Source of the DNA: Tubulanus polymorphus
Taxonomy: Eukaryota; Animalia; Nemertea
Assembly (NCBI RefSeq): GCF_964204645.1
Contig: NC_134032.1
Span: forward strand, 2,502,075-2,566,074
Reading direction: 5' to 3'
Length of the DNA: 64,000 nt
Below the pieces are notes generated by a model. It did not search any database and was not told the origin of the DNA. It worked only from the letters and a program-made list of their open reading frames with translations. Numbering within the stretch: the first letter of the stretch is position 1; each line of letters starts with the position of its first letter. A program made the position numbers and the translations under genes. Below, piece after piece: positions 347 to 64,000 of this stretch.

Positions 347-428
347 TTTAATACTATATTTTTTATTAAAATTGATTTTAGAAGTTCAATGATTTAAATG
401 TTATTCATATATATATGAATATTTTAAG

Positions 429-829
429 AGTAATAGGGGTAATGGGCTTTCAAGCTAAAGGTTTAATGATCGAGTTCATTAATAACATATATTAAAAGTA
501 ATTAAAAAACTATAATATATTTTCATAACCGCGTGCATTTCAGTTGAATAATAGAATAATTATTATCATTTGAATATATTTGATTATTTGAATTTGTGTA
601 TTGTAATTAAATCAATTGGTCGCGGAGCGGTGGCGAAGCGGAGCGACCAATTGATTTAATACAATATGCTTTTTATATTATTGATATCTTAGAATAAATA
701 TTTAGTTTTGATATAAAATGCACGCGGTTATGAAAATATATTATAGTTTTTTAATTACTTTTAATATTTTGTTTTTTAATGGGCTCGACTGTTCGACCTT
801 TGGCCTGAAAGCCCATTACCCCTATTACT
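429..829. repeat. ~400-bp imperfect palindrome (putative terminus of a Polinton-like element)
   Basis: agtaataggggtaatgggctttca ... tgaaagcccattacccctattact; inner stem attaaatcaattggtcgc/gcgaccaattgatttaat around a GC-rich loop. Confidence 0.9.
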
Positions 830-6452: not shown

Positions 6453-8683
6453 TATTCATTTTGATTTGGTGTAGTTGGTATAAGAAATCAAATTAAATAT
6501 ATGATATTAATAATTCTGAAACTACTGCTATTAAAAATGAAAATACTTCTGAAATTCAAAAATTCACAATAAAAAAAATGGATTAATATTTTTGAAAAAA
6601 AGCAAAAAAAAATTTTATTTTAATTAATTGAATATCTCACTACTTCTGTCTATCTACGCGGAGCAAATTTAATTGTCCAGATAAGACATTTCGGATTCTT
6701 GATATTAATTTTTTAATTATTTTTTTTCTTAATTATTTAGTCTACAACTTCTAAATCATGATGCCCGTCTTCATTTTTCCCATGGTAAATTATTTTAAAT
6801 CCTTCTAAATCTTTTAATTCCTCTGCTTTTCTCGCGTTGTACTAACATTACAGTAGCTTAAATTTGCTGTTTCTTTCTCTCCATATTTAGTTTTTATCTT
6901 TTCCAATTTCAATATTTTATGTTCAATTTCCTTTGAAACATCGATTAAATTTTTCATTTAAAATTGTTTTTGTTGGTTTTATTCTGTTATTTATTGTTGC
7001 TAAGAATGCTTTTCTATCTCCCATTTATTACGGGGGAAAATTACTTGTGGTGATGAGTGGTGTCGTACTCTCGCACTCTGGTATGAAACCCCACTTTTAC
7101 AATTACTGTCCCCAATCACTTCTGCGTCACTGAATATCCAGAAATTATACAAGTACAGTGAATTAATGCGACTCCCGTGTTTCACTTACGTCAAAAAGAC
7201 CGGTACAAAAATGTCCGATCCACACGTCCCATAGCTTACGTCGTGACTATCATAACGAACAGCAATAATGGAATTTTTTTCGGATGGAGAATATTTTTGT
7301 GAAAAAATACGGAACGTTGAATGCTAATTTCAGCGGTTGGTTTAGATTGCTTGGATTATATTGCTCGAGCGATGATACTGATATATGCATGTTGTTAACC
7401 ACTTCTAGATGTATATAGTTGTAGTGTTTCTCATGCAAATAAAGTTAGTTCAGTCAATATCTATATATCCAAGACGCGCTCGGTGTCTTTTGTCTGGAAT
7501 CTGGTATTTGCTGTAGGCTGCAATTAACAAAAGTTTACGGTACAAACGACGAGTTTCGATGCTTGGCATTTTGTGAGCTAGTCATTTACGGACGGGTCTT
7601 CAGAGCATTTTGAAGACTTCGTCGCAGGCTATGATGCCGGGCTGTGTAGACGAGAAAGATAAAACCGGAGGGTTTCAGTACAGTAGGGTGGTTGAGCTAG
7701 GGGAACTAAGGAGCTGAGGAAGGAGAACTTAAGGTGGTGGAGCTAGAGCTAAGAGGCTGTAGGTTATGAAATGATTAAATGAAGATTGTACAAAAAGGCT
7801 ATATCAGAATAAATGATGGAACGATAGACCAACGATTGAAGTCATTGTCACTTGAATAGAAGTCGGAATAACTCAGATGGAGGTCAGAACCAGAAAATCA
7901 ACTCAGATACAGTCACCGTGGATATTACTCGACAACACAACACATATGGACAATAACACTGGTTAAACGAACAACTAATATAATACTGATGGAGAACCAT
8001 AACATATCCACTCCTGCATCCAGAAATAAGGCGACTCGTCTAACATCGCCAACGCCACGGAATCATATTAGAGTTCCAGGTTACACTGGACAGGCTGGAG
8101 CTTCAAATACACTTCCATGTGATTTTACCAATGCAGTACTTGTGCTAGGGAAACCTCCTGCATAAATCTGGCAAATATGCAATAAATGGAGTGCTCGGTT
8201 TTACCGGATCTTCCGAGTATTAGTGATATAGAAGGCGAATTCAGAGTTCACTACGAAAAACCGTCATTGTAGTATTATTTATATACTTCCGACGAACCAT
8301 ATACACCTACCCCACCAGCTTAGAAACCACAACCACCTCCAGCAATATCTGAAATCTAGAGGCTTCCATCGAATATTGCAAAAATATAGTAATTTCATAT
8401 TCTAAAATTTGTATATTGACAGTTTATTTTATGATCAATCATTTCGTTATGACACATGTGACACGAACACTTAAGATTCACGACCGATGTGATTATTTTT
8501 CTACGTATCATTCCGGATAACAAATACTAAATTTTTTTTTTTGGTCGCACACGAAATACCGTGATTTATTGAGGAAAATTGTTTTGCCCGAAAAATTAAA
8601 AACCTGACCAAATCTGCAAAAGAATATACAAATTGTTCTTTATTTTGTTGATCCAAACATTGGCCGACTCGTACATTGCTCTT

Positions 8684-35255: not shown

Positions 35256-36451
35256 AACAAAAAGATTTTATGCATATTACTTGCTTTATTTAAACTTACT
35301 TTATTTACTTGCATTACTGGTATTTTTGTCATTCGGGAACAAAACTTCCCTCCCGCATCTGCTCTATAAGTCTCGGGTTTAGCTTTTTATTTCAACTTTT
35401 TATTAAAAAAAAAAAACAATAAAAGTAAAATTCGCCCGCCCTCGTCATAGAAGAGAATCTGATGAGAAACTAGGGTATTTCTGTGTGGCCTAACAGACTT
35501 GAGCCATTTATTAATTACTGTCAGTAAGTCAGATTCGGTTCGGAAAAAGACACCTTTAAGTATCCACGTCGCGTTTATTAGAGACGTCCGCCCGTCCATT
35601 TAACCCTGGTCTATTCATGGTCTATTCAGACTGCCCATTTTTGCAAATGACACACTCGACGTATGTGTTAAGGAGATGAAGCGAAATATCCCCGACAAAA
35701 ATCGACTTAAGAAGTGCCTCGTTTCTCGATAATTACCGAATCTTTGTGTTCAATATTTATTCACTGCTCGACGATTATGCTATTCCCGAAAGTAATTTGA
35801 ATTGTTTTACAAACAAATTAATTCAAAACCATACATATTGTCATACGAATGAGAGCCATACATGTCTTATACTTCGGTAAAGTTGAGACTTGTAAGATAG
35901 TCTACCCCGAGTGAAGTTTAAAGGGGTGTTCACACGACATCGTTAAGACCGGCCTAAACTTGGTCCGGTCCAGTTTGACCAGCCCAAGCGTTCACACGAG
36001 CAAACAATCCATTCCGAATTTGCCTTTTCCATTTTAGACCGGTTTTTGACGGACCTAAAAGAGCGAACCCAGGTCCGATCCAAATTTTTGAACGGACTAT
36101 TCTGTGGTTGGAACTGGCACGAGGTCCGGTCTAAATCGTATTCTGTGGTATGAATTCAACTGTATTAAACTCGTCACCAATTCGAAATCAAGCTGATCAG
36201 CATAGTTTTTAGATTTCATATAATTTCTATATTGCCTAAACGTTAATTTCTTTACTAACGGATCATTATTTATCTTAAAATCCGAACGTGTATTTCTCGT
36301 TCAAATTTAGACTGTTACCGGTACAACGTTTACATGAAACACATTGATGTCAGATATCACCTTTAAGTGGCCAGCCCTCTCAGAGGGAACCGTGGTAAAA
36401 TAATTATTACCACAGACAACAATACCTGGAAATCTATGACACGCCTAGATG

Positions 36452-36590
36452 CACCCGATACACATCCTCTTCTCCGATACTTTATTAAAGAAGGGTAAAC
36501 CTTCATTCGATAGTCTATCGCCCCGTGTTATAGTATACTATATTATGGTAACCCTTCTTAGATACTCATCGCCAGAAGGGCGAGCGCGTT
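36452..36590 (+). repeat. Left TIR candidate
   Basis: Reverse complement of 61720-61858. Confidence 0.9.
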
Positions 36591-38846: not shown

Positions 38847-41800
38847 ATGCCTCGCAAAAGAACTATTAAAGAATTGCATACAGATTATCCTGAGGTAACC
38901 ATCGTAAAATCTGGAAAAATGAAGCCTATTAAAGTTGTAAGAGAGAAACAAAAAGAACCGATGTTATACCTGGTCAAAGATGGTGTTTTTCAAAGCGTCA
39001 GTGGGCAGTCGGAAATAAAAGGAAATGTTCCTGATTCTGGCTCATCTAATTTAACTGAGCCTGAATCTTCGGACTATGAATCACTTGATCCAACTGATAG
39101 TAAGTCAATACTAATACACTCTTATTCAATCAAATGAATTCGTTGAGAGAAATCCATTTGTATGGTACATGTAATTTTTAGCTCGGCTGTGACCGAAGGT
39201 CAGTGGAGCTGATGGGTTAGAGTGATTATCTGTCGTCGTCCGTCCATTCCTCCATCAGCTTTTGCTTCAATTTGCTACTAGTGCTACAGTTCTTTTTTAA
39301 TCTTGACCAAACTTGGTATGAAGTGAAAATGGGCCAAGGGCTAAAAAGTTATGGAGCCGTTTTTCCGAATTTGATCTCTAGAGGGCGCTGTATGGGTGGC
39401 GCTTGTAAAATCTTTAAATCGCTTCTTGTCCAACAATTATAATCTCATCTTGACGAAACTGGGAATGTAGATACTACGGGCCAAGCACTAAAAAGTTATA
39501 GAGCCGTTTTCCGTTATAGAGCCGATCTCTTTGAACTCTTGAGTGCTGTGAAGGTGGTCCTTGTAAAATCTCATCATAAAACAGGGGGGGGGGACATTTT
39601 GTAGCAGCAATTTTTTTGCGTAGCTGTAGCTCATGAGATGTTCCATGATTGTGGTCAGTTTCAAGGTCATGACTCTCTGTTTTGTAATGTTCACCAGGGG
39701 GCATTGAATAGTGGAATAACGTATGATATTTCCATATTGCATGTTTTGTTACCACGATCAAAAGCAAAATTGTAGTTGCAAAAGGTCATTGATATCTGTA
39801 TTTTATAGATCGCCAGATTGTGGAGCCTTTCAACCAGCCAGTAGGCATGGTGCCCCCTAGTTAATTTGCCGGATGTTCCCATTAGGCATTGGTGATGGCA
39901 TTGTACTACTATAACTACATCTTGTTTTAAAATGATTGATCCAAATGAATATTCTTTTAACTCAAAAGGTCATTCTGAAAGTGCAACGAAAGGCAGTTAT
40001 GGTGATTATGGAAAGAGACGAGTGTCTGAAGTCCATGCGTGGGATGAGTTATCGGACAAGCTCACTGAATCTGCTCTGAAGCAGTACAAACCGATGTCGT
40101 TTGAATGTTTTATCTGCGAAAAAATCGAACAAGAGCCTTTTCGATGTGATGATTGTCATCCATTTGCTACATACTGTTTGGAATGCAGCATAAACTTACA
40201 TACATATTTGCCTTTCCATCGATTGAAGCAGTGGCAAGCTGTAAGTATTTATAGCCCATGTGGGACTCAAGTCCCAGGGGCCTAGCTTTCACTATTCAAC
40301 TGTCATATGTCCATTATTCTGTCAAGGCGAACTTTTGAAGACACTTAATTCAATTGTCTGTCCATATATTTGGCTTGCTAAAATCAGCTCTTTTGAAGTT
40401 TTCAAGGGAAATTTCTAATACACTTCATGGTCAATTGGTATATTTGGTCAAAATTTGTTCACTCAAGGTCTTTTTTTGCGTCTAAAAAGGTTGTTTTTTA
40501 TTTGAAATCTCATGTCTCTATCGCTTCTTTGCTTGGAAATATTGCACAAAATTTGACATTGGCACACATTGGAAATGTTTTTGAATAATAAGCTCACGCC
40601 AATACAAACCCTGGCCACAAACCCTTCATATGGTCTATTACATTGTCCATTTCTTGGCCAGACAGTGTCCGCCAGTCTATATTTCACTCCAGTCAATCAT
40701 ATGCGTGGTAATGATGTAGGACAAATCATGCATCTCTTTGGCTAGATATATAGACGGGTGGGCATTCAGTGTTAACCTCTCGGCCCACGAAATTTTGGGC
40801 GATGTAATAGACCAATGAAGGGTATACGGCCAGGGTTTGTGTTGACGGGAGCTTTAGCGGGCGGTAATCAAGCCCTGGCAAGTGAGGATGCCTGGATTCA
40901 GTGATAAAAATCGCCTATTGTGGGCCCTGCTTGGGTCCTAATTTTGCTGGAAAGTATTCTTTTTCAGTCAAGAAGTCCTTCCATTTGGGTCTAAAATTGC
41001 TGAAAAAGTCCTTAGTACTTCTTTTGGTCCTGGCCTTACCAGTGGAAACGTGAATGAATGGTAAAAACTCTACGTACATTGTATTTTATGATGTTTTTAT
41101 TTTGCACAGATGGATGGTTTTTTTAACCATGTGTGTCCTAGGGAGCCACCCCTCCTCAGCAGATTACCATGCAATTGTACCTTGATTGAAGAAAAAATTA
41201 TTACAGTCTTCGATTCTTATGGTATGTATAATTTGCTCAAGATTTAACTCTTGTTTTATAAATGACATTATCTGTCAGTAGGTTAAAATGCATGCCAGTA
41301 TCTGGATTTAGATCTAAAAAAGTAAATTTCTTTAACCAAACAGCAAGAATTCACCAGGACGGTTAAAATCAAAATCAACCATAATTTACTTAAGATTTAT
41401 TCACTGCTATGTTTGATATTGATTAATAGGTCGATGTGATGCGAAAAAAGTTCAGCACTGCGAATGTCAAAGTCTACCTATTGCTTTAACCAATCATCGT
41501 TTGTGGCCTGCATCTCCTTCCCAGCCAACATACGCTGCATCATTTGATTTTCTCAAACTTTTTACGACTCTCCAAATAGAAGGTCAGCTGTCAGCAAGAG
41601 CATTTGCAGACACGTATGCTGTGATGAACGCTTATTCGCTTGACCAGGTAAAGTAATACACCCCAAGTGCACATCTCCTGTCTATATTTCATTGTTAACT
41701 AAAATTTGATGTGCTTTGATGTTACGTAGGTCTCACAGTTGTATAGACTGCTGACAAGTGAGAGTCTGAGTAGATTTAGATTGATAACTTGTGAGGAATA

Positions 41801-44800
41801 TCTGTTGTCGAAATCTTACACTTATAAGCGGTGCTTGGCTTGTCCTGAGGTATGGCTTCTGGCTGCATTTCTGACACTGGTTTGCCATATAAAATAGACC
41901 CCGCCTTAACCGGTACCATTTGGACCTTCATTTAGATTGAATGGATTACCGGATAGGCAGAGTCTTCTGTATTCTGAAATATTTTTTGAAAATCAATTTT
42001 CATCTTCCTAGGATAATGGTAAACTTTTTGTGTCAGCTGATGCTAATTTTGGATTGGTTCGGAAAAAGAATGCAGGAAGGAGTTACTCTACCCCACAAAT
42101 CTTAAGACCAATATTTTTAGACCAAGGCAATGTAGATTCGTATGTTTTGAGATGTTGTGATACATCCAAACTTGATGATGGTGTAAATATTTTGGTTTTG
42201 AAAAAAATGGTTTTGATTGTATACAATATATATTAATATATTTAATTGAAATTGCCATTTGATTAATTTTTCCAGGAATGTAATAATTTCCAGGCAGGAA
42301 CAGACATCCGTGCCAAAAACAAAGCTGTCAATTTGGATTATACTGGTGTGATGGGTTTGGCATGTTCACGACATGAGATTCCACTAGCGATGCTAAATCT
42401 AAGGCACGGTGAAAGGTAATCTAGTTCTGTATCTTACATGTGCATATTTTGGAACCACAATCAATTGCAAATATGTAGCTCATGAAATCTTCTCTGATGA
42501 GTGCCAAGATCATTGGTTTCTGTGTATGTTCATTAGAGGCCATTGAATATTAAAATAGTCAATGATTTCATGGAGTCCTTGGATCCCTAGTTTTGATGTG
42601 TGAGAATGTGTTTGATTCATATTCCAGGCTCAGTTACGTTGTTTCGCTGTTGAATCATATGGTTGCAGAGCTGCAAGTTGAGCATAATCAATTAGAATTG
42701 GTAGTTATGTATGACATAGCTTGTGTATTGCAAAAATATCTAAAGGTAGATGCCATTTCTTAGTTATTGCCCATAGACCATGTTATTGAAACAATATCCC
42801 TAGTTCCCAAATGAGAATGGTTTCCCTGAACCCATTCTAACTACCACGTGCATTTGATATTTTTTCAGAAACCAGATATTTCAAGAATGTTGCCGGGTAA
42901 TCTCCAATTTGCCATTCCATTATTTCACTGCTATGGTCATCAAGCCAATTGTCAAGTATGGATCTAACCTAGGTTTAAGTTTTCTTCTGACTGGATCATT
43001 ATATTTATTTGAAAAAAAAAATGTTTTTTTATCTTTTATTATCGCTCAGACAAACTTAAGTCCACGTCGCTTGGAAAATTTTGGTTTGACGGATGGAGAA
43101 ACTATGGAACGATTTTGGTCTTATATCCGACGATTTGCTCTAATCACAAAGGAACAGACTCCAAATCGTAGGTTAGAGTTACTTACATTAGCAGCCCAGC
43201 ATTATACATGGAAGAAAATGAATAAAATTGGTAAGTAAATCCAGGATGGTATGGTTATCACATATTGATAATTTTGACATCATTTTTGTTTGTGGTTTCA
43301 GAATTCGCATTGTTTGAGCGGTTTAAGAGAGCAGATGTAGCTATAGAACAAGCAGAAAAGGAACTTGCCGATATATCATTGATAATTCCAGGTCTCGATT
43401 TGTCACCATGTATCTTATTTGCTAGAGGAATAAAGCTGAATTTACATGTATCTTTTCATTATTTTTAGAAATAGCTACTGGGAGAGATGATATCTTTGAA
43501 CAGTGGAATTTCCAGGAAAAGGTATCAGTGACTCATAAAAGAGATAAAGGTAAAAGTTATGGCATGGTGTTAACAAGTTTAACTCTTTCCATGTTGATCA
43601 TCATTAATGAAATTCCACTCAGCTGTGCTGGACCTTTTCGGGGTTGTGAACACGTGGCATTGAACTAAGTCAACACCCCAAAACCAATAATTTTCTGAAA
43701 GCTCATGAATGGTTATATGATACACTCTAGGGTTTGGGTCCATTGAGGGTCACGCTGACTTATTGACCTTTGAATTAGAAATCTGGGAAAAAATGGAGGT
43801 CACCTGCCATAAGTTACTAACAGCTTATTCGCTTGACTAGGTAAAGTAGGCACAGCAGTGGGCACAGCTTCGCCATCTAATAGTTCTATACTATAGTATA
43901 CCAGATACATGACTGAGATCTCATCCACTTGACAAACCAATAAAAATTGCCCTATAAACTTTTTTTCAATGAAATTATTTTAGATATATCCCTGGCAAAT
44001 GAGTTTGCCCACGACATCAGCTATAGTCATCTCATGAGGCGAAATATTTAACCCACGGTGTGGAAAGAGTTTTAAGGCCTGTTGTATTGATTATTTTTCT
44101 TTTTCAATATTAAGGAAACCCATCCTCATGGCAAGAAAAATACGTCAAGCTCTTGTCTACATACTACAGTGTCTGGTAAGTTATAGTAATTATGAGATAA
44201 ATCATCAGAGGTGCACTTATTAAGTACTTAAATGAAATATGAATGTAAATATATTTTTTTTCTCAGTACAATGATAAAGAGCTCTAATGATGGTGCCACA
44301 TGTATGACCCTTGTTAAAGAGAGAGATGAGTAAGTTGGAGTAACTACGTACATTGGTATTAGTTTTCAGCTTGTTTTCTGTCAGTTTTCATTATGGTGGC
44401 ATTGTGATGATACTGATACTGTTGTCTCGTTTAGACTGGATGCAAGACTTCAATCAATTGAAAATATTCGGAATCTCACTCGATGGTCCAGTTCTCAATA
44501 CGAATACATCAATCTAATGGAAGCAATGAATGACAGGAAACGTTGTGCATATCTTCGACAAATGCGAACCTTAGCATGTGAGATGAAGGTTCTTGATAAA
44601 GCTTCAAAAAAACATGCAGGTGAAACTGCCATCCCATGTGACATAATTGCTACATTGTCATTCCTCCCTTGTAAATCCCTTCAGAACAGACATAACTCAT
44701 GTATATACCCCACTAAATTTTAGGTGGCCAGAAAATTGCAAGTCGTCTGATCAAGCAGCGGAAGCGGGTTGTGAAAAGTATAAAAAAGGCCATTAACTTG

Positions 44801-45316
44801 TACAATTGTCTGACTGCGGATATCAACAGAATTAGTTCTAAAGATGCTCTGAATCTCGAAAGCACAATTTACCAGCCATTGTCTAACGAGGTTGGTCTTT
44901 ATTCTTCTCGGTGGAGCTTGCTACAAAATTTTTCTCGTATTTGATTTCCTGTCTTGTTCTTCCTTTAGATGTCAGCTTTAACTACAATGCAACGTAAAGC
45001 CTTAGGCAGTTGGTTTACTCTGAAAAGGTCGATAGAAGAAAAGCAAATGGTTCAGGTTGAACTTTCTCATGTGATACAGAATTTAGAGATTCAACGAGCT
45101 GATCTTCTTGCTGCCAGGGAAGATGACGATGCAGATCAGGGACTTAAGAGTTTGATATATGAAAAACTGAAGTTCCTTCATAAACGCATTTCCTCGTGTC
45201 AAGAAATATACTCAAATTTAGTGGAAAAACAAACTGCTGAACCGGAAGATTCCAATTCCGCACTGTATACTTTTGATTCTGATGATCAAGAGTCTGACAC
45301 AGAAGTAGTTGTTTAA
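38847..45316 (+). CDS. KDZ (Kyakuja/Dileera-like) transposase with N-terminal CxC cysteine cluster, 17 exons, ~888 aa
   Basis: Exons 38847-39099, 39969-40240, 41110-41221, 41430-41647, 41730-41849, 42012-42182, 42276-42415, 42628-42745, 42869-42955, 43050-43230, 43302-43391, 43469-43549, 44115-44175, 44267-44329, 44435-44619, 44724-44890, 44969-45316 join in frame (2667 nt, all GT-AG). Motifs RCDDC..CLEC..LH..FH, LWPASP, CLACP, SADANF, TGVMGLACSRH, HGERLSY, MYDIAC, FHCYGHQANCQ, GLTDGETMERFWS. Confidence 0.9.
39176..39862 (+). mobile_element. Non-autonomous Helentron-like (HINE/DINE-type) element in intron 1
   Basis: 5' tttttagctc..hairpin, gtcgtccgtcc tract, caccagggggc core, 3' ggcatggtgccccctagtt. 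Confidence 0.65.
43583..44069. mobile_element. Intronic MITE, piggyBac-like ends
   Basis: ttaa|ctctttcca ... tggaaagag|ttttaa. Confidence 0.5.
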
Positions 45317-45839
45317 TTTTGAATTTAGGCCACACAAATTTGGAATTTAGGCCACAGAAAAGAAAACTCGCGCCCGACTGACCCGATATTTCGTCGTTTC
45401 AAATAATCATTTTCAGAATAAGATATAATTGCCTATCGACCCTTTTTCAAAATTTTGGGTGAAATAACTTTTTTCAAAAATATATTTGGCCGACCGACTA
45501 CCAAACTCCTTTCTCGTAATTTTTTTTTTTTTAAATCAAATCATTATATCGGCACAGATCATTATCAAAAAATATTTTATTACATCGGATGTTACAAATT
45601 TGATTGGAAATGGTGCAGCCATGGAAATGGTGCAGCCATGGAAATGGTGCAGCCATGCTCAGACAACTTTGCTAATCGGACATTGATGGCGACCTTGGAT
45701 TGTAAAATTAAAATTCCCGGAATTCCGTGAAATATGTTCAAAATATAATTTTTTATAGGTAATTATACAAACACCTCAATTTCCTTTTATTATTGTGGTC
45801 TACTAGCTGTTGATCATATTCCTGACTAAAAATTTGAAC

Positions 45840-47312
45840 TTTTTGAGGGAAATTTTTAAGACGCTTTGATCAATTACCTTGATCTTTCGGATGTATGTGT
45901 ATCTTCCCAGGGCCCATCAGCATAACAAAAATTGGGTCGATCGGACTCAAGATGGCCGTCCTATGACCTTTTTAGTGCCCAAAAATGTAAATTTTGGCCC
46001 AAATTCTGAGCCCTGTAGCTTCCTACTGGTTTGCCATTTCTCAATTTGCAATTTGTGATGGGTATTCTTTGGAAAGGGATGTTTTAAGACCTGAGACAGT
46101 TATTTTTCATCAGCCAATTATGACGCAATTGGCAGCCATCTTGGTGTCGCCAGTACTCATTTGTAAGTGGGAAAAAGTTTTTCCACATTATATTGATACC
46201 TAAGCGTATTTTGATACCACAATCAATTAGAAAGTTGTAGCTCATAACGTGTTCTATGATTGTGGTGAGTTTCAAGGTCATTGGATTTTGTCAATGACCA
46301 CCAGGGGGCGTTGAATAATACAATATCTTAGCATTTCTTTATTATATTCGTACCTATGCATATTTTGTAACCACAATCAATTGGAAAGTTATAGCTCATG
46401 ACATCATCTATTATTGTTGAGAGTTTTAAGGACATTAGTTATTCTATATGGTCACCAGGGGGCGTTGAATAGTAGAATAACTTAGTATTTCCTTATTATA
46501 TTGGTACTTAGGCGTATTTTGTTATCATGATCACTTGCAAAGTTGTAGTTCATGACATGTTCTATGATTGTGGTGAGTTTCGAGGTCATTGGGTTTTGAA
46601 TATAGTCACCAGGGGGCGTTGAATAGTAGAATAACTTAGTATTTCCATATTAGATTGGTAACAAGGCATATTTAGTTATCACAATCAATTACAAAATTGT
46701 AGCTGCTGACATGTTCTATGATTGTGATGAGTTTCAAGGTCATTGGTTTTTGTATATGGTCACCAGGGGGCGTTGAATAGTAGAATAACTTAGTATTTCC
46801 ATATTAGATTGGTAACAAGGCATATTTAGTTATCACAATCAATTACAAAATTGTAGCTGCTGACATGTTCTATGATTGTGATGAGTTTCAAGGTCATTGG
46901 TTTTTGTATATGGTCACCAGGGGGCGTTGAATAGTAGAATAACTTAGTATTTCCATATTAGATTGGTAACAAGGCATATTTAGTTATCACAATCAATTAC
47001 AAAATTGTAGCTGCTGACATGTTCTATGATTGTGATGAGTTTCAAGGTCATTGGTTTTTGTATATGGTCACCAGGGGGCGTTGAATAGTAGAATAACTTA
47101 GTATTTCCATATTAGATTGGTAACAAGGCATATTTAGTTATCACAATCAATTACAAAATTGTAGCTGCTGACATGTTCTATGATTGTGATGAGTTTCAAG
47201 GTCATTGGTTTTTGTATATGGTCACCAGGGGGCGTTGAATATTGAAATTGTTAGATTGTTGAGCATTTGGAACCACTTCCCAAGTGGGCATGGTGTCCCT
47301 GGACCCCTAGTT
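45840..47312 (+). mobile_element. 5'-truncated HINE-type element with an internal 154-bp tandem array (~7 units)
   Basis: agggggcgttgaata at 46303, 46457, 46611, 46765, 46919, 47073, 47227; 3' end tcccaagtgggcatggtgtccctggacccctagtt. Confidence 0.8.
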
Positions 47313-47858
47313 TTCAATCTCTGTTCATCCACTACTGTTCCCCTGTGAATTTGGAACAATATTTTTGCAAATATGTCCTGGCCAGCTTCAGTATTGATTT
47401 CTTTTCAATGGAAATTATAAATTATATCAAATGTGTTTTTAAGTATTTTTCTGAATTTTTGCATCAAATTATTGAATAAAAAACTCATGTACATCAGATT
47501 TTATTAACATAGAGTAAAATTTATAATAATTTATATTGTGATATATTTTGGCTAGAAATGCGATGTTTGTTTTTATTAGTCTATGCCTGTATGCGTGGTA
47601 TGCTAGTGTAATGATATATGAATATTTATATAATATGTGTATGTGTGTAATTATCGTGTTCATGAATAAATAGATATGTGACGCTAAACGTTCATTTGTC
47701 ATTCACAATACATTGAAGATGATTTCGTTGTTCGTTATTTCTTTGAATATAATACGTGGATGAGCCGGCTAGATCTATTTTGTGGTATTTTGGATTGAAA
47801 ATGATCTTCAAAAACCAGGAGGCCCGTAGAGTCGAACAACAACAACAACAGCAACAAC

Positions 47859-50303
47859 GAAACTTCTATTTCACGCTTAAAATAGTCGAAAAATGTGGAT
47901 ATTGATGATTGTTTAATGTTTTCTGCCTGCTTGGTCGTTCTTGTCTCAGTATGTTTCTGGTGAATTGCGAATATGGTTATATATTAGCAGTTGCGCGTTT
48001 CTGATATCGTCGTTCAAACAAGAACGACCAACAATGAGAAATTGATCGAAACTTCTATTTCACGCTAAATATAGTCGAAAAATGTGGATATTGATGATTG
48101 TTTAATGTTTGCTGTCTGCTTGGTCGTTCTTGTCTCAGTATGTTTCTGGTGAATTGCGAATATGGTTATATATTAGCAGTTGCGCGTTTCTGATATCGTC
48201 GTTCAAACAAGAACGACCAACAATGAGAAATTGATCGAAACTTCTATTTCACGCTAAATATAGTCGAAAAATGTGGATATCGATGATTGTTTAATGTTTT
48301 CTGCCTGCTTGGTCGTTCTTGTCTCAGTATGTTTCTGGTGAATTGCGAATATGGTTATATATTAGCAGTTGCGCGTTTCTGATATCGTCGTTCAAACAAG
48401 AACGACCAACAATGAGAAATTGATCGAAACTTCTATTTCACGCTAAATATAGTCGAAAAATGTGGATATTGATGATTGTTTAATGTTTTCTGCCTGCTTG
48501 GTCGTTCTTGTCTCAGTATGTTTCTGGTGAATTGCGAATATGGTTATATATTAGCATTTGCGCGTTTCTGATATCGTCGTTCAAACAAGAACGACCAACA
48601 ATGAAAAATTGATCGAAACTTCTATTTCACGCTAAATATAGTCGAAAAATGTGGATATCGATGATTGTTTAATGTTTGCTGTCTGCTTGGTCGTTCTTGT
48701 CTCAGTATGTTTCTGGTGAATTGCGAATATGGTTATATATTAGCAGTTGCGCGTTTCTGATATCGTCGTTCAAACAAGAACGACCAACAATGAGAAATTG
48801 ATCGAAACTTCTATTTCACGCTAAATATAGTCGAAAAATGTGGATATCGATGATTGTTTAATGTTTTCTGCCTGCTTGGTCGTTCTTGTCTCAGTATGTT
48901 TCTGGTGAATTGCGAATATGGTTATATATTAGCATTTGCGCGTTTCTGATATCGTCGTTCAAACAAGAACGACCAACAATGAGAAATTGATCGAAACTTC
49001 TATTTCACGCTAAATATAGTCGAAAAATGTGGATATCGATGATTGTTTAATGTTTTCTGCCTGCTTGGTCGTTCTTGTCTCAGTATGTTTCTGGTGAATT
49101 GCGAATATGGTTATATATTAGCATTTGCGCGTTTCTGATATCGTCGTTCAAACAAGAACGACCAACAATGAGAAATTGATCGAAACTTCTATTTCACGCT
49201 AAATATAGTCGAAAAATGTGGATATTGATGATTGTTTAATGTTTTCTGCCTGCTTGGTCGTTCTTGTCTCAGTATGTTTCTGGTGAATTGCGAATATGGT
49301 TATATATTAGCATTTGCGCGTTTCTGATATCGTCGTTCAAACAAGAACGACCAACAATGAGAAATTGATCGAAACTTCTATTTCACGCTAAATATAGTCG
49401 AAAAATGTGGATATTGATGATTGTTTAATGTTTTCTGCCTGCTTGGTCGTTCTTGTCTCAGTATGTTTCTGGTGAATTGCGAATATGGTTATATATTAGC
49501 AGTTGCGCGTTTCTGATATCGTCGTTCAAACAAGAACGGTGGACCAACAATGAGAAATTGATCGAAACTTCTATTTCACGCTAAATATAGTCGAAAAATG
49601 TGGATATCGATGATTGTTTAATGTTTTCTGCCTGCTTGGTCGTTCTTGTCTCAGTATGTTTCTGGTGAATTGCGAATATGGTTATATATTAGCATTTGCG
49701 CGTTTCTGATATCGTCGTTCAAACAAGAACGACCAACAATGAAAAATTGATCGAAACTTCTATTTCACGCTAAATATAGTCGAAAAATGTGGATATCGAT
49801 GATTGTTTAATGTTTGCTGTCTGCTTGGTCGTTCTTGTCTCAGTATGTTTCTGGTGAATTGCGAATATGGTTATATATTAGCAGTTGCGCGTTTCTGATA
49901 TCGTCGTTCAAACAAGAACGACCAACAATGAGAAATTTATCGAAACTTCTATTTCACGCTAAATATAGTCGAAAAATGTGGATATTGATGATTGTTTAAT
50001 GTTTTCTGCCTGCTTGGTCGTTCTTGTCTCAGTATGTTTCTGGTGAATTGCGAATATGGTTATATATTAGCAGTTGCGCGTTTCTGATATCGTCGTTCAA
50101 ACAAGAACGACCAACAATGAAAAATTGATCGAAACTTCTATTTCACGCTAAATATAGTCGAAAAATGTGGATATTGATGATTGTTTAATGTTTTCTGCCT
50201 GCTTGGTCGTTCTTGTCTCAGTATGTTTCTGGTGAATTGCGAATATGGTTATATATTAGCAGTTGCGCGTTTCTGATATCGTCGTTCAAATAAGAACGAC
50301 CAC
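47859..50303. repeat. 189-bp tandem array, 13 near-identical copies
   Basis: gaaacttctatttcacgct recurs every 189 bp (one 4-bp insertion near 49539); each unit has a 14-bp IR ttggtcgttcttgt / acaagaacgaccaa. Confidence 0.97.
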
Positions 50304-50582: not shown

Positions 50583-52264
50583 ATGGCTGAATGTCTAGGC
50601 GTGGATCTGGATGCAAGTAGCGATATTAGTGGAATAGAACCATTCGATGTAAGTGATGAAGACGATAGTGACAAAGAACAAGGCCGGCAGAAGAAAGTCG
50701 GCAGTGAAACCCCGATCCTCGGTACGCCCGTTGAAACAGATGGGCTCCGACTCAACAACCAGTACCCGGCCAACAAGCTTACTGGAGCTGCTGTAAAAGG
50801 TCGTAATTGTTTAAATTTATATACTGTCAAGGCATAGCTGTAGGACTTGGTATTAGCTGATCTGATGTCAATGATAAGTAAGAAACCTCTTTATTTACTT
50901 CGCACAGAGTCAGAGAGAATACGAGTGGGATTTGCGTATGTTCGTAAGTTTCCTCCCAGATGTATGGGTGTGATAAATGTAGCGGAAAATACACAGGCCC
51001 AAAAACAGATCTGTGGACTACATGATATTCCACCAACATGCCCCTATGGAAGTGGGGATCTGGTCGTTGAAATACACGGAAATGGCTATGGTTATTTGTA
51101 AGTATGGACAATAAATCCTCTTATCAACCAAAATTCTTATCTTACCTGTACTAAACTATCTTCTAATTGAATATCTTTCTTTTCAGCTTTTATACTCATG
51201 AATTTCAAGAATTTCTTCCCTCCTGCCCAATTATTGGCGAAATTGATACGATTAGACGCGTGGAAGCTCTGCGGTTAAAGTATGGTGGAGCATTGCCAAT
51301 TGGGCCATGGCCAATGGAGGAAGTTAAAGAACATGCAAAATCGATTATACCATTGTTTATGGAAAAAAAAGCAATTGGACTTAAGCCCTCCCTAAATATT
51401 GGACTTCATTTCCTCGCATGGAAGTATGATTCGATTAGTTTCGAAGAACAGTGGAATATTCATGTCGACCAATTAAAAAAGCTCAAGCAGCAACAGGACA
51501 TCGAAGAAAATGTATCTGTAAAACGTGTTGATGTTACGACAACTTTGTCCAGGCGTAAAAGTAATAGACGTCGTGTTGTTTCCGTTCTAAAAAGTGACGT
51601 TAGCGAAAAGAACCAGGACTCGTCATCAGTTATTGCGCCCGATACAGCTACAGTATTATGTAAAAAAGTAGACAGTGGATATGAATGTTCGGTGTGCGGC
51701 AGAATTTTTGGCAATAAATCAAATTTTAATCGTCATTCAAGAATACATTGCAAAGAACTGAAATTTTCATGCGAGATATGCGGTAAAAGCTTTACCGATA
51801 AGAGCAATTTGAACGTTCATGTTAAAAGACATGTGCCAAAAGGACAATATGCTTGCAATATTTGTGGATTAAGATTTATGTCTAGAGGCAACCTGACTGA
51901 CCATAAAAAGCGTCACACTTCTGAAAAAGTTGTTATTGCTGATCGATGTATTTTGCCTTACTGCAAAAAGTATGGTGAAAAATTTAAAGATCTCCTTCAG
52001 CATGCTCGACAAATGCATAAACTAGATACGATATGTGCCTATAACGAAGCGGTTAAAAAAAGTATTGACAAAAAATTAGGTAGTTCGAGTACCACCACAA
52101 ATTGCCATTGTCCGAACCATGATATCTGGATATACCGTTGGGTTGGCAGCAATCATAATTGTTATCTATGTGAGTGTCCTATGAAATTTACTCGCATATT
52201 CCACGAGGAGAAGAAAGCACATATTTGGACACGTACTTGTCGCTATTCTTCTCATTTGTTTTGA
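50583..52264 (+). CDS. C2H2 zinc-finger protein, 3 exons, ~494 aa
   Basis: Exons 50583-50799, 50908-51097 and 51187-52264 join in frame; three canonical fingers (CSVC..H..H, CEIC.., CNIC..), one atypical finger and a Cys/His-rich tail. Confidence 0.85.
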
Positions 52265-53809: not shown

Positions 53810-56800
53810 ATGGACAAAGAATTTGAAAATACCCATTGGCCATTATTAAACACCAAGGAAAGGTAAGCATGCACTTGGGCAGGTCTCTACTATCAAACCA
53901 TTCAGACCTAGTTCTTATAATTAACTGATACATGCACTATCATTACGTTGTTGACTTAGCCTAATGTCGTTCCAAGATCAGAGATAACTTATGACAACCT
54001 CTCTGATGAACTTTGGCGAGTTTGACTATGAAAGATCTTTTAAGCTACTTACATTTAACAGTCGTTAACTGCTTTAGTTTCAATTTGAATTCAGACAGTC
54101 TACTTTGGTGTCCTATTATGAGAAAGGGATGACTCATTGTGGAAATGAATTTACCAAAGGAATGGTACGAGAAGCCAGTGTTGCTACAGGCATGCCAGAG
54201 AAATCAGTTAAGGTAGGCCTATATAACTTTTTCTTATGATCTAGGGCCTACGGTGTTTTCTCCAGACTTTGTGATGAAGCACTTTTACTAAAATGATAAA
54301 TTGATAAACTGTATTTTAAAAGTTTTAGTTTATTCTGTTTAAGAAATGGATAGAGAACCACAAGGTACAATGTCGAAAGAAAGCTGGGATTTACAACTAT
54401 GAAAATCTGAGTAAGAAGCAGCGCATTCGATCATGCAGACCGTACGATGTTTATCTCTCTGATAAAAAAAAAGGAAAATGTAAGCTAGATACATGTTGAT
54501 TTTAGTCAACCTCTATGTAGTTGCTGAGCCTGTTTAAAGTGAGGTGTGTGTAATTTGTATATCATTTTAGGCCAGGGAAATTGGAATGACCAAACAGAGG
54601 AAGCAATGGCTTCATACGCACAGAGGGCTGCAAGCCACAGCCAGCCTATCGGCCCAGAAAATAAAGAAAATAACATTGAATTTCTGGTGCATGAACTAGA
54701 AAAAAAGGTAGGCCGTTTCATTTAACCATTAATGTTTATGTTATTTGCAGTCATCTAAATAACATAATTATACTTCAGGTAAATAAATTTACTTCGACAA
54801 CAGAAAAGTTGGATGTTGTGGCTATTGCTATTACTAAGGATGGGAATAGAATGTTTATATGTGGATCACCAATTCCAACAAAGTGGTTTGAAAAACAGAG
54901 AGAGGTTCAGCAAAGTCTGAAGTCACTTTATCAGCCAGGTAAAGATAATTCAAACATACACACTTTCACTATCATTAACTAAGATAATTCAGGCAGTCTC
55001 AGTTTCTATACGTTTGTTGCTACATTCAGATGATGACAATCAATTAGAAGATGTCAACGTACTGCGATCGAAAGTCACAGATATGTTCAATCGTAAATAC
55101 AGTAAGCATATATTTTAGCTACTTGATTTGATTATACATTCAAATAGTCGAAAAATTCAGCATTTGACAATCGTAATCATTTCATATGCGCCATTATATA
55201 GCTTCAGCAATAAAGGGTATCTCCGGGACGAGATGCAGCTACAAAGCGGTTGATGCTGGTCAAGTCAGGGCATTTAATTTGCCAACTGGAATAATTTTGA
55301 AAAGACCATCATCTTATGCAAAAAACTCGCTGAAAGCACTTTTGAAAAAGGAAGATAAAATATACTTCGAAGGTACACTGTTTCAACTTACCGGTAATAG
55401 ATATTTAACACACTAAGTTAGACACACTATTACATAATATATCAACATTTATCTTGATGTTGATATATTGAATGTCATTATTAGGCCACACAAAGAAATA
55501 CCGTAGTTTCTCAGGTTTTTTCTGGAAAGTGACGCTGGTGAGCAAATTATATTTTCATAGCTCCTTTGAAAAAGAGTTGAAATAAATAGCTCGAAACCAG
55601 AGACTTATATAAGAGATGCGGGAAGTAAGTAAATAACAAATACAGCGGTGCGGGCGAGCAGGATTTAATTTTTATAATAAAAAAAGACGATTCAGATTGA
55701 TGGTTTGCCAATGCGGGTTAGCGCATTTGAATTTTCGATTTTAATTTAATTAATTTCGATTTTTACTTTTTTTATGATGCGGGTGGCATTTGACCTTGAA
55801 GAACTAGGGTATTTCTTTGTGTGGGCTTAATGAATTGAAATACAATGTACTGGTACTGGTATATGTCTTAATGGAATATGGAAGGATAACATCAGAATTA
55901 TTTCTTATTAGTTGATACTATGAGCCACGAAGAAGCAGCGTCACCAACTGAAGAACTTCAGTTTCCAGAAGCCACTGAAGGTACAACTAAGTCTTTTTGT
56001 CTTATAAACTTACAAGCTATGGTAATATTGGGGTAAATTATCTTGTTTCTCATTGTAGATTCAGATGCTACAGAGATCATCAGAGGTACGTATTCTTATG
56101 TTATTCTTACGTTTAAGCAAAAAAGATATTGTTGTATCGCTAGGCTGAATTATTCTTTCTTTTTTTCATCAGAACCTAATATGGCAAAAAGAAAAGCCGA
56201 AGTCCTCACAAAGAAAACAGGGAAATCAGGTACGTTTTTAACACTAAGCTATGCAGTCTTTGATGAAAATATAATTGCACAAAATCAATTAAAAAATTGT
56301 TCTCTTTCAGTAATCAAAACTGGCATCAAGAAAAGGAAAATAAATAATGGTAGGGTATGCACGTTTAAAGAAATATTTCAAAGCAGCCAGATCAGCATTA
56401 TTGTGTTTTATAAGGTAAAAAATTGATACCTTGTTTGTCCTCGGCAATAAATTTTCTAATCAGTTTATTTCTGTAACTGCCAGGTCTGTTATTGTTAGCT
56501 TGATCATGGTTTCAAAAAAAGTAAATAAACAGAGTAGATACATGGCCACCTGCGTCAATTTTTAAGCTCAGAAATAAGAAACATGGTATCAATTCTTTTT
56601 TCCTTATATCACAAATACAATATGCTTTTTTCCAAGTAATGCATTGGTCTGTTATTTCAAAATCAATTGATATGTTTTAATGGAAATGAAATGGAAATGA
56701 AACTGATGGATAATATTAGAATTATTTCTTATTAGTTGATACTATGAGCCACGGAGAAGCAGCGTCACCAACTGAAGAACTTCTGTTTCCAGAAGCCACT

Positions 56801-57997
56801 GAAGGTACAACTAAGTCTTTTTGTCTTATAAACTTACAAGCTATGGTAATATTGGGGTAAATTATCTTGTTTCTCATTGTAGATTCAGATAGTGCAGAGA
56901 TCATCAGAGGTACGTATTGTTCTTTATATTTAGAAAATAAATAAAATGAGATATTATTGAATAGCTAGGCTGAATTATCCTTTCTTTTTTTCAACAGAAC
57001 CTATGACAAAAAGAAAAACCGAAGTTGTCACAAAGAAAAAGGAGAAATCAGGTATGCAGCCTTCAATTCAGTTAATACCAATCGAATACAGCATAACCTT
57101 TCTAGTGAACACTTCGCTTCCTAAGAAATTGTTCACTATAGAGAGGTGTTCACTAATTGGAGGTAGCACATATTTTTCCGCAAAACCCAGGTTTTAGAAA
57201 CCCTTCTTGAAGAACACTCCACATTGAAACCCCCTGTCACGTAAAACTCTGCATTTTTTGCTAGTCTAGACAGTGAACCCGCGTTCAATGCAGAGTTCAG
57301 GCGCCACAATTGACCTTGAACTTGCACTAAAGATGTTGTTCCTTACTACCGAAACTGTGTTAAGTGTAGACGCTGCTCACCGTGAACGCGGGTTTTCATT
57401 GAACCCAGGTACGTTGAAACCTGGGTACAACACGCTAGTGAGGACAAGGTTATTTTGGGATGGGACCACTGTTCACTATAAATACTCATTTGGTAAAGTT
57501 CACTAAATGGTGGTTCTGTTTAATTGAAAATGAGTAGGGAAAATTTGGTTCCCGGGTAAAAGTGTTCTCTAAGGGAGGCGTTCACTAAATAGAGGAGTTC
57601 ACTAAGGGAGGTGTTCACTGTAGTTTCGTTTAAAAAAAAAATGATTGAGTTTTTTTTCATTTTAGCAAATAAATCCAGAAAGAAACCAAATGATGGTATG
57701 TATTTATGCAGAAACAGCATCTTAAAGCGCAAAATTTCAATTGTAATATGTAGCCTGTGGTAGTATATTTGATATCAATCTTTAATTCCAGACATATTCT
57801 TGGTGGAAAAAATTGTTGGTCATCAATCGAAAGGAGGTCAACAATATTACAAAATTAAGTGGTTGGACTTCTCTTCAAAACACAACACATGGGAGCCGAT
57901 TGAAAACCTGACATCCGTTATGGATATGGTGATCTCGTATGATAAAAAGATACAAAGTATTGTAGAAAAACATCAACCAATTGAATTGAAAGAATAA
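53810..57997 (+). CDS. Atypical homeodomain + HMG-like + TFII-I/GTF2I-like segment and I-repeat + chromodomain protein, 16 exons, ~474 aa
   Basis: Exons 53810-53862, 54095-54212, 54344-54479, 54571-54707, 54779-54938, 55030-55101, 55202-55372, 55912-55980, 56059-56085, 56173-56229, 56311-56349, 56736-56804, 56883-56909, 56998-57051, 57666-57695, 57792-57997 join in frame (1425 nt). HD helix 3 TGMPEKSVKKWIENHK; I-repeat LRSKVTDMFNRKY..LPTGIILKRPSSY..LKALL..IYF; chromodomain FLVEKIV..YKIKWLDF..NTWEPIENL. Confidence 0.82.
55484..55826. mobile_element. PIF/Harbinger-type MITE with TTA TSD
   Basis: tta|ggccacacaaagaaatac ... gtatttctttgtgtgggc|tta; related ends at ~35467-35492 and ~45326-45370. 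Confidence 0.75.
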
Positions 57998-58620: not shown

Positions 58621-59891
58621 AAACTAGGGGTCCAGGGACACCATGCCCACTTGGGAAGTGGTTTCAAATGCTCAACAATCTAACAATTTCAATATTCAAC
58701 GCCCTCTGGTGACCATATACAAAAACCAATGACCTTCAACCCAATACAATCATAAAACATGTCAGCAGCTACGATTTTGTAATTGATTGTGATAACAAAA
58801 AATGCCACGTTACTAATTTAATATGGAAATACTAAGTTAATCTACTATTCAACGCCCCCTGGTGACCATATTCAAAACCCAATAACCTTGTAACTCACCA
58901 TATTCATAGAACATGTCATGAACTACAACTTCGCAATTGATCATGGTAACAAAATATGCCTAGGTACCAATATAATAAGGAAATACCAGGTTATTCTACT
59001 ATTCAACGCCCCCTGGTGACTATGTAGAATTACTGATTTCCTTAAAACTCACCACAATCATAGATGATGTCATGAGCTACAACTTTGCAATTGATTGCGG
59101 TAACAAAATATGTATTGGTACAAATATAATATAGAAATACTAAGATATTGTATTATTCAACGCCCCCTGGTGGCCATATACAAAAAACAATGAACTTGAA
59201 ACTCACCCCAATCATAGAACACATTATACTCTAAAACTTTCTAATTCATTGTTGTAACAAAATATGCTTAGGTACCAATATAATGTCGAAAAACTTTTTC
59301 CCACCTACGAATGAGTACTAATGACACCAAGATGGCTGCCAATTGCGTCATAATTGGCGGATCAAAAATACCTATCTCGGGTATAAAACATCCCTTTACA
59401 AAGAATACCCATCACAAATTGCAATGAGAAATGGCAAACCAGTAGGAAGCTACAGGACCTAGAATTCTGGCCAAAATTGACATTTTTGGGCACTAAAAAG
59501 GTCATAGGACGGCCATCTTGAGTCAGATGGACCCAATTTTTCTTATGCTGATGGGCCCTTGGTAGATTCAAATATATTCGAAAGATCAAGGTAATTGATC
59601 ATATCGTCTTCAAAATTTCCCTCGTAAACTTCGAAAATGTGTAAAAAGTGCTGATTTTGGCAAACAACAATGGCTGCCAGTCGGCCATGTTGATTCTGAT
59701 AGGGCCAGTTTTTGGGCTGAAGATGTGTCTAGGGTAGATACATGTATAAACCAAATATCAAGACATTACCTTGAAGCGTCTTCAAAACTTCCCAAAATAA
59801 CTGGATTCCGTCTACGGACAGACGAACAGATGGACGGACGAAAAGTGAACGCAATAGCCCGCTGGGACTTAAGTCCCAAGTGGGCTAAAAA
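58621..59891 (-). mobile_element. Full-length HINE/DINE-type element, inverted relative to 45840-47312
   Basis: On the minus strand: 5' subTIR gcccacttggga with hairpin, GTCY tract, ~154-bp central repeats, 3' subTIR tcccaagtgggc. Confidence 0.8.
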
Positions 59892-61719: not shown

Positions 61720-61858
61720 AACGCGCGCGCCCTTCTGGCAATGAGTATCTAAGAAGGGTTACCATAATATAGTATACTATAACACGAGGCGATAGACTAT
61801 CAAATGAAGGTTTACCCTTCTTTGATAAAGTATCGACGAAGGGGATGTGTATCGGGTG
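61720..61858 (-). repeat. Right TIR candidate
   Basis: Ends GTGTATCGGGTG; reverse complement of 36452-36590. Confidence 0.9.
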
Positions 61859-64000
61859 GAAAAATTAACTGCATTCTATACAGGATTAATAGACACATTA
61901 CCATGCGTTCAACAGAGGTAATCCATATACACTGAGCGTCGACATCATCAATTCTAACATAGATTGAAAAGATTTTTCCAATCTGGAAATCACCTAGACT
62001 CATTGTATATTAGAACAAAAAGTTGAACTAGCCTTATTGCATATCATAAAATAGAGTGAATAGTAGAAAATCTTCAAAAAAGTTTCAGTTACCTTTCAAT
62101 ACTATCCACAGCATCAGCTGTATAGTTAGATTATTTCGATCATAGATAGCCTATAGATATTTATCTCGTCATAAGCTCAAGTAACTTTTGATTTAATTCG
62201 TCCTCTTCAATTGCAGTATGAAGATGTTATTGCAATATTGGACCTTGAATGTCGATTACAAACGATTGTCAGGCTTCACTGTTCTAAACCGTGTTCATTC
62301 GTACGATTTTCAATCTGAGCTTTTGTGAACAAATATTTCGGAAACGATCAAAAACAGAGCAAAAACCAGGAATACCATCTTCATCAGAAAGGTAAAAGGA
62401 GGTACTGAGATAATTCAAGTAATCATAATAATGGTATAGTCTTGGAAAACCAGTAATCAGTTCTGATTACTGATTACTGGAACCATAATCCGAGAACGAC
62501 GAAGGCCAAGATAACCAAACAAACGAACACAACCTACTGCGTTTACTAATTAGAAAATAGAAAAGACGTCGTCCATCAAACTGATCAACGTTTACAAATA
62601 GTCCAAGCTGATCTGAGTACTATGTGTCACTCAATCACTACCAGTGTTTTTTACATTATTACTGTGATATATCGCAGTGTAACCACGATAGAACCACGAT
62701 TCAAATCGATAGAAACCAACGACAACCGCTCGAATCTCAAAGAGTTAGATACCGCGCGACCAGAAATACCTAGTTACTAAATATCATAGAATTAGTGGCG
62801 CAACATTCGAATTCAAAAAGCTTTGATTTTGTAGAATTTCTATTTAAATCTTGAAAAGTGGATTGTCATATTTTCTACACCGTTCTTATTCCGTGCATTG
62901 TTTGCAATTGTATTATTTTCACGTGGCTTTTGTCAGTAAGATCAGCCATGTTAAAACGTTCACATTAAAGGCAGAAGGAACTTACTTCATTTGTATCGTC
63001 TGAAACGCACCACAATGTCACCAGATGTATATGTATATAGATTAGTATATCGAGCTGAAACGCACCTGCGTCACTGCGGCTTTTCCCGGCGTCGAATGGA
63101 TTTACTGGTGCAATTTACCGCTGCACAGTGACATTTATTTCAGAACCACCTGAGGCGCTAAATATTGATGGAATACCTTTCAAATGATCTATTATGTCAT
63201 GTAGCGAGGAATAAATTGATCATCTTCTTCTGCGCCTAAAATACAAAACGATTCATTGGATAATTGGCGCTGTCGGTCTTTTCCAAAGATGCCACGACTC
63301 GCGTGCTTGGCTAAAAGTGGCATTTAGCCAAGTTCTGGCGTGGCCTTCGACACAGGGCTGATAGGACGAGTGCATCCAACCATGGGCTCTACGAATCGTT
63401 TTATAGAGGTCCATGTTCCAATATCAGCGGGCAACAACTCTAGGGGCCGTTTGGGGCCTGAATTTGCAGCCCCGATGTTCGAATTGGCCGGTCCAGCGCA
63501 GAATCGCCGCACCAAATCTTGACATCAAGGCCAAGCAATGATCGCAATTTATTCGGGCCGTTAGTAATATTGGCGCCGGCCGCCGGTGCCCCGGGTTCCC
63601 AGTAATACTGACTCTAACAGTAGCAGTTTAGATACAGCAGCATGGCGACGGCTTTGTGTGTTTGAAAGTCATTTATTGGAAAAAAATCTACATCGAACGA
63701 AAAAGATCAGCCCGGCCGTGTCGACGATCGGCACCGAGTCCGGCACATCTCGCCGGTCTGAGCCGCAACGTCTATTTAGTGTATACCAATATTACACCTA
63801 CTGTGGCAATAGAGGATTGCTGGTCATTTCCGGTTGTCGAATAAATCACAAAAGAAGATTTATTGTATCTGATTTTTATAGCTTTTGTTGAAACACAAGG
63901 TGAGCGAGATACCTGTCCAAATATGATAAACCATAGCCATTGGGTTTAAATAGAATGCATTTAGATCAGTGAATGATATAGATTTCCACAATCCGATCCC

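Follow-up and report, generated by a model that had tools for sequence, protein, structure and literature searches.

How a repeat typical of the TFII-I transcription factors comes to lie inside a transposon of a nemertean worm is the question raised by a stretch of 64,000 nucleotides from Tubulanus polymorphus (contig NC_134032.1, positions 2,502,075 to 2,566,074; hereafter the window, to which coordinates refer unless another sequence is named). Research on TFII-I factors has dealt almost entirely with vertebrates, where they are regulators implicated in Williams-Beuren syndrome and social behaviour, and the one transposon tie of the family known to us is a late hAT fusion in GTF2IRD2. A sequence-only reading of the window had pointed to a spliced gene in a candidate KDZ transposon, whose product seemed to carry a TFII-I-like N-terminal segment followed by an I-repeat. 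We conclude, with a probability of roughly 0.8, that positions 36452-61858 are a recently mobile KDZ element whose own passenger gene encodes a protein with an I-repeat and a chromodomain, a putative accessory factor of the element.

The passenger gene and its I-repeat

The GTF2I-like I-repeat was located at 55030-55372 on the + strand, with a phase-1 intron (55102-55201) interrupting it after "...FNRKY". Its exons were searched singly. Exon D, with 56 residues and about half of the domain, matched the Pfam GTF2I profile (PF02946) with 26.6 bits (E 7.8e-6), 0.4 bits below the gathering cut-off of 27 bits. Among 177,635 PDB sequences it had only two matches, both weak (E 0.15-0.28) and both to GTF2IRD1 repeats. 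The join of exons C and D was judged through the public T. polymorphus protein XP_074643312.1 (P0001), the annotated product of an element copy on contig C2 which is identical to the window over these two exons. P0001 covered positions 1-73 of the 75 in PF02946, with 41.3 bits (E 1.9e-10), and came first among 20 proteins when 1.84 billion representatives were searched exhaustively with HMMER. Word-indexed searches with P0001 and with a crinoid protein described below (P0003) each retrieved only the query itself. When aligned with crinoid, annelid and vertebrate repeats, the nemertean repeat possessed the conserved columns of the family.

An AlphaFold2 model of the repeat (predicted local distance difference test, pLDDT, 86) had as its top ten PDB matches the ten solved GTF2I domains (template modelling score, TM, 0.72-0.79). 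A second model, made from invertebrate sequences only (pLDDT 83), recovered the same ten domains (TM 0.71-0.77), and the match is therefore not due to the vertebrate rows of the alignment. The root-mean-square deviation was 1.3-2.6 Å for most of these matches, and E values jumped from 1e-2 to 1-4 once the ten GTF2I entries were passed (the next match of the first model had E 1). The predicted fold (long helix, short helix, strand, helix, strand) agreed with that of the solved I-repeat domains. Judged by profile and by predicted fold, the passenger gene encodes a genuine GTF2I-type I-repeat, as the sequence-only reading had proposed. That the likeness is a coincidence of short motifs and the gene an artefact of prediction might be argued from the sub-threshold score of exon D and its weak PDB matches, but the score of the full domain, a fold match specific to the ten GTF2I entries and the splicing seen in RNA contigs refute this explanation.

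The peptides from which the likeness was originally noticed are encoded on the + strand at 54571-54707, 54779-54938, 55030-55101 and 55202-55372, and are joined in a contig of sequencing run X4. This 845-nt contig matched the window with zero mismatch in the order 54093-54212|54344-54479|54571-54707|54779-54938|55030-55101|55202-55372|55912-, and more X4 contigs extended the exon chain across nine further joints up to the exon at 57792-57997. The gene, 54129-57997 (+), has 15 exons with GT..AG at every joint. Exons 1-8 lie at 54129-54212, 54344-54479, 54571-54707, 54779-54938, 55030-55101, 55202-55372, 55912-55980 and 56059-56085, and exons 9-15 at 56173-56229, 56311-56349, 56736-56804, 56883-56909, 56998-57051, 57666-57695 and 57792-57997. 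With the phase tracked through each exon, the frame stays open from the start codon (ATG at 54129) to the stop codon at 57995-57997, about 445 codons in all, and this transcript-supported frame replaces the 474-residue spliced protein expected from sequence alone. Run X4 shares its organism label with the assembly, has no library type on record and was read as RNA from its splicing behaviour alone, since its contigs carry joints while the DNA runs X2 and X3 from the same sample, which span the passenger-gene stretch, had zero splice joints in either. Run X5, presumed to be RNA, contained nothing of this stretch. For the passenger gene, transcription and splicing are shown, and several copies have kept it intact.

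The last exon (57792-57997, stop codon included) encodes a chromodomain and is joined to the upstream exons in the RNA contigs. Its match to Pfam Chromo (PF00385) was above the cut-off, both in the window (55.6 bits, 57800-57997) and in P0001 (52.9 bits). Between the I-repeat and the chromodomain lies a linker with an acidic ("DTMSHEEAASPTEEL") and a basic ("KRKAEV..KKK") part, which is doubled, exons 7-9 recurring as exons 11-13. This corresponds to an 824-bp internal duplication (55881-56232 and 56705-57054), of which both units are spliced into the RNA contigs. The copy on contig C2 has a single unit.

Only one I-repeat was found in the transcript-supported frame, and the several tandem I-repeats of TFII-I proper were not encountered there. 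One repeat does not make the nemertean protein a member of the TFII-I family. The supposed parallel with the human TFII-I N-terminus was not confirmed. The segment in question (54571-54938, +; exons 3 and 4) does encode the peptides reported. In BLASTP its exon B had no meaningful match to fish GTF2IRD1 or to the N-terminus of a Capitella I-repeat protein, and hhalign against a small vertebrate TFII-I N-terminal profile returned E 0.09 with a probability of 0.6%. The Capitella N-terminus gave a comparably weak match on the same template columns. The likeness of exons 3-4 to the TFII-I N-terminus would thus appear not to exceed chance and is treated as a lead only. Homeodomain or HMG modules were also considered for the N-terminal exons but are unproven: neither exons 1-2 nor the Capitella and crinoid N-termini had a Pfam match (E up to 10), and BLASTP gave E 0.097.

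The surrounding KDZ element

The position of the gene inside a KDZ transposon was borne out. Comparison by blastn with five other genomic copies delimited an element of 25.4 kb (36452-61858, +), bounded by 139-nt terminal inverted repeats at 36452-36590 and 61720-61858, which are 94% complementary. In all copies the element ends were CACCCGATACACATCC...GGATGTGTATCGGGTG, the tips of these repeats. Target duplications of 7 bp flanked three of four full-length copies (ACATATC on C6, GCAACGT at the copy C4a and ATGAATG on C12). A multi-exon transposase gene spanned approximately 38847-45316 (+). The Pfam KDZ profile (PF18758) matched it with 39 bits at 42909-43238 (cut-off 26.6), and a genome scan with the KDZ profile detected 42021-42425 (profile 2-101) and 43047-43202 (profile 164-215), with 39.9 and 37 bits. 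A cysteine-rich open reading frame at 39932-40285 had no Pfam match at E 0.1 or better. In tblastn it aligned (E 6e-8) with a Capitella stretch that Pfam labels CxC1/CxC2. Kyakuja elements are reported to have 7-bp target duplications and CA..TG termini, and Zisupton and Dileera 8-bp duplications (Kojima 2025, PMC12730594). Since its 7-bp duplications and CA..TG ends match those reported for Kyakuja, the element is labelled Kyakuja-like. It is a DNA transposon of the KDZ superfamily and was recently mobile.

Including the one in the window, six copies carried the I-repeat, at least four full-length and two truncated, on contigs C2, C4, C6, C8 and C12. The three other full-length copies on C4, C6 and C12 were about 99% identical to the window element (blastn of 40-kb stretches round each I-repeat site). 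The truncated copies begin at window positions 38580 (on C2) and 52123 (C4b, 96.7% identical to the window). The Pfam GTF2I profile and a wider profile of 36 repeats matched only these six copies in the 268-Mb genome, and a separate host I-repeat gene was detected there by neither profile. Because all detectable I-repeats sit in element copies, and because a Capitella homologue adjoins KDZ transposase sequence (see below), we regard the I-repeat gene as belonging to the transposon, not to the host.

Downstream of the transposase the element contained, in this order, a 154-bp array, a 189-bp array, a frame with C2H2 zinc fingers and the I-repeat/chromodomain gene. The 154-bp array (unit about 154 bp) lies in the left arm (45833-47313) of an internal inverted repeat, the right arm of which (58621-59636) holds an inverted copy of the array. 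This arrangement could suggest that the passenger region, at about 45.8-59.6 kb, was a foldback-type transposon which landed in a KDZ element, the composite then spreading as a unit, since the long inverted arms flank both the zinc-finger and the I-repeat gene. However, no stand-alone copy was found, all six I-repeat sites are in copies of the KDZ family, the I-repeat likewise adjoins KDZ sequence in Capitella, and the arms consist of the element's own 154-bp array. We consider such nesting very improbable.

The internal arms were 1-1.5 kb long and 79-97% complementary, were made of the 154-bp tandem unit and bracketed the whole passenger region. In C4b, an older copy, the right-arm stretch 58623-59887 was deleted. 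The 189-bp array (47858-50302), recognised as a ladder of offset blastn self-matches, varied in unit number between copies, as seen from shifted ladders. The C2H2 frame (51167-52264, +) has 365 codons and three or four fingers (Pfam zf-C2H2, 61.6 bits), and was identical in three other element copies. It may be a passenger gene in its own right or else belong to the I-repeat gene as an upstream exon. It lies upstream of that gene on the same strand, and C2H2 fingers were likewise fused to I-repeats in the crinoid and neighboured them at one Capitella locus (L027).

The left flank of the window copy was a repeat with five copies of 93-94% identity on the same contig, and on its right 26 bp (61859-61885) were followed by a repeat of at least 70 copies. 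Both truncated copies, the one on C2 and C4b, abutted sequence of window 1-829 (95-97% identical). It seems that a different mobile unit, with its end near window position 829, disrupted two KDZ copies, each at another point, by insertion or by breakage. Among KDZ loci of other families in the genome, some had open frames of 227-232 codons.

Relatives in other invertebrates

A profile search recovered three further I-repeat proteins from the annelid Capitella teleta, for which four are now listed: P0043 (CAPTEDRAFT_192830), P0042 (CAPTEDRAFT_201808), P0044 (CAPTEDRAFT_187800) and P0002 (CAPTEDRAFT_221214). The sequence-only reading had proposed looking for KDZ sequence near invertebrate I-repeats, and in this second phylum it was present, within 4 kb, at two of the four loci. 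At one (L037, scaffold KB300021.1) transposase-like pieces at 2337-3433 of the scaffold were followed by an I-repeat at 6585-6803 on the same strand. At the other (L039) the I-repeat gene was 0.8 kb from a KDZ core piece 57% identical to that of the nemertean. Across the core pieces, the Capitella and nemertean transposases were 54-57% identical. The single gene model of P0043 fuses CxC1 (36.3 bits) and CxC2 (28.3 bits) with GTF2I (31.9 bits). The I-repeat region was multicopy, its copies on three scaffolds being 93-99% identical over kilobases.

Like the nemertean protein, the Capitella proteins are invertebrate I-repeat proteins from multicopy DNA beside KDZ transposase sequence. Unlike it, they lack a chromodomain, their repeat is about 26-37% identical to that of the nemertean, their elements look degraded and their scaffolds are short. 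Residues 330-419 of P0043 formed a weakly Tudor-like tail (Pfam Tudor_FRX1, E 0.03) in the place of the nemertean chromodomain, which may be a parallel chromatin-reader tail.

The crinoid Anneissia japonica possesses a protein (P0003, XP_033122800.1, annotated as "zinc finger protein 665-like") with four I-repeats and at least 10 C2H2 fingers. The I-repeat intron falls at the same point as in the nemertean ("..FNSKY|" in the crinoid, "..FNRKY|" in the nemertean), and an intron in the N-terminal, helix-turn-helix-like stretch also corresponds ("..IMVK|NWIH" and "..KSVK|KWIE"). From these two common intron positions, the homology of the nemertean and crinoid genes therefore reaches beyond the single domain. 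The association with C2H2 fingers is common to both as well. Unlike the nemertean gene, the crinoid gene fuses four repeats with the fingers, has no KDZ sequence within 10 kb and looks host-owned.

Non-vertebrate I-repeats are already present in public databases, in Capitella (UniProt R7T6A0), in Anneissia and in a 166-member cnidarian cluster combining Homeodomain and GTF2I, so that the description of these factors as vertebrate-specific, which the sequence-only reading had repeated as usual, is outdated. A transcription-factor census recorded I-repeats in one tunicate and none in amphioxus or C. elegans. Fungal clusters from Basidiomycota and Mucoromycota were weak, candidate look-alikes (TM 0.68, PF02946 in 11-13% of members), which are of interest because KDZ elements abound in those phyla.

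Several observations weigh against the reading of the gene as an accessory gene of a recently mobile KDZ element. The window copy has no 7-bp target duplication (36445-36451 compared with 61859 onwards) and is flanked by two unrelated repeats. No I-repeat was present at seven or more further KDZ loci of the genome (contigs C2, C3, C4, C10 and C11), and tblastn gave no KDZ match within 10 kb of two Capitella loci (L027 among them) or of the crinoid locus (L028). The GGATTA and RGATTR motifs targeted by vertebrate I-repeats showed no enrichment in either the terminal repeats or the arrays of the element. The RNA contigs cannot tell which element copy is expressed, the library type of X4 being moreover unrecorded, and the copies are too alike for measuring selection on the passenger gene. 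In the older copy C4b non-synonymous changes in the gene outnumbered synonymous ones, as expected from decay after insertion.

Some of these observations would also fit a recent gene capture. Pack-MULE and CACTA elements pick up host genes, and the KDZ family of the window could similarly have acquired one transcription-factor gene of its host, or parts of several, as cargo with no role in transposition. The other KDZ families, which lack this passenger, are consistent with this, as are the cargo, pieced together from host-type domains of common kinds (C2H2, I-repeat and chromodomain), and the crinoid homologue, which looks like a normal host gene, 17 kb long and next to a CLCA/VWA gene. However, no host copy is detectable in the T. 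polymorphus genome, the 15-exon frame is intact and spliced, and the pairing of I-repeat and KDZ element recurs in an annelid with related transposases. We therefore think a recent capture unlikely, though less so than nesting, and favour a passenger gene that is the element's own.

Origin of the I-repeat and comparison with known systems

The vertebrate TFII-I family (GTF2I, GTF2IRD1 and GTF2IRD2) shares domain family and fold with the nemertean protein, the repeats being 21-32% identical, and the columns common to both are LR..V..F, Y, GLP.G, [KR].P, L..IL and I.F. The nemertean has one repeat where vertebrate proteins have two to seven; its loop is 2 residues shorter and "SYK" replaces "PY". 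Unlike the vertebrate factors, the nemertean protein has an added chromodomain, is transposon-borne and multicopy, and has an N-terminal region that is not demonstrably common with their dimerisation region. In a tree of the repeats a single branch (96/96) parted all vertebrate from all invertebrate repeats, and the nemertean repeat was not grouped among the vertebrate ones. This split fits repeat multiplication within vertebrates. On the direction of change the repeat tree is silent, and it neither supports nor rejects an origin of TFII-I in a passenger gene of KDZ elements.

Such an origin is plausible given the patchy distribution of the I-repeat and its transposon context in two phyla. We tentatively suggest, as a possibility rather than an expectation, that the I-repeat began as a DNA-binding module of KDZ accessory genes, common to nemertean and annelid elements and perhaps to those of cnidarians or fungi, and that GTF2I and GTF2IRD1 arose from it by domestication and repeat multiplication. 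Alternatively, the I-repeat may belong to an old animal gene family which was captured once by a lophotrochozoan KDZ lineage. Among the papers searched, none names both KDZ/Zisupton and GTF2I/TFII-I, and the link between KDZ elements and the I-repeat appears to be unreported. A "vertebrate" DNA-binding domain travels with transposons in invertebrates, and the origin of the TFII-I family becomes a concrete and testable question.

For the element itself, the passenger protein may be an accessory factor that binds DNA and chromatin. The DNA bound through the I-repeat would be the ends or arrays of the element or else its target DNA, and methylated histone tails would be recognised by the chromodomain. 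Jointly the two domains could guide or regulate transposition. Two systems, both unrelated in fold and element, offer analogies. PIF/Harbinger elements encode a Myb-like second protein that binds DNA and recruits the transposase, which resembles the role suggested for the passenger, and the integrase chromodomain of chromoviruses steers integration, as the nemertean chromodomain might. The DNA and histone targets of the I-repeat/chromodomain protein could reveal the ancestral role of the I-repeat.

Fungal KDZ transposons carry TET/JBP dioxygenase genes (Iyer et al. 2014; Kojima 2025, PMC12730594). As in the nemertean element, their passengers are directed at chromatin or DNA, and Kyakuja shares with it the 7-bp duplication and the CA..TG ends. 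The nemertean element differs in its animal host, in its long terminal inverted repeats, which fungal Kyakuja is reported to lack, and in its cargo, a predicted DNA- and histone-binding factor and not an enzyme. With it, the rule seen in fungi, by which KDZ elements bear passenger genes directed at chromatin, gains an animal example. In GTF2IRD2, I-repeats are fused to a Charlie8 hAT transposase (PMC10641963), and are thus physically linked to a DNA transposon, as in the nemertean. However, in GTF2IRD2 a host gene of mammals has taken in a hAT transposase, whereas the nemertean element is a KDZ transposon that carries an I-repeat gene as separate cargo.

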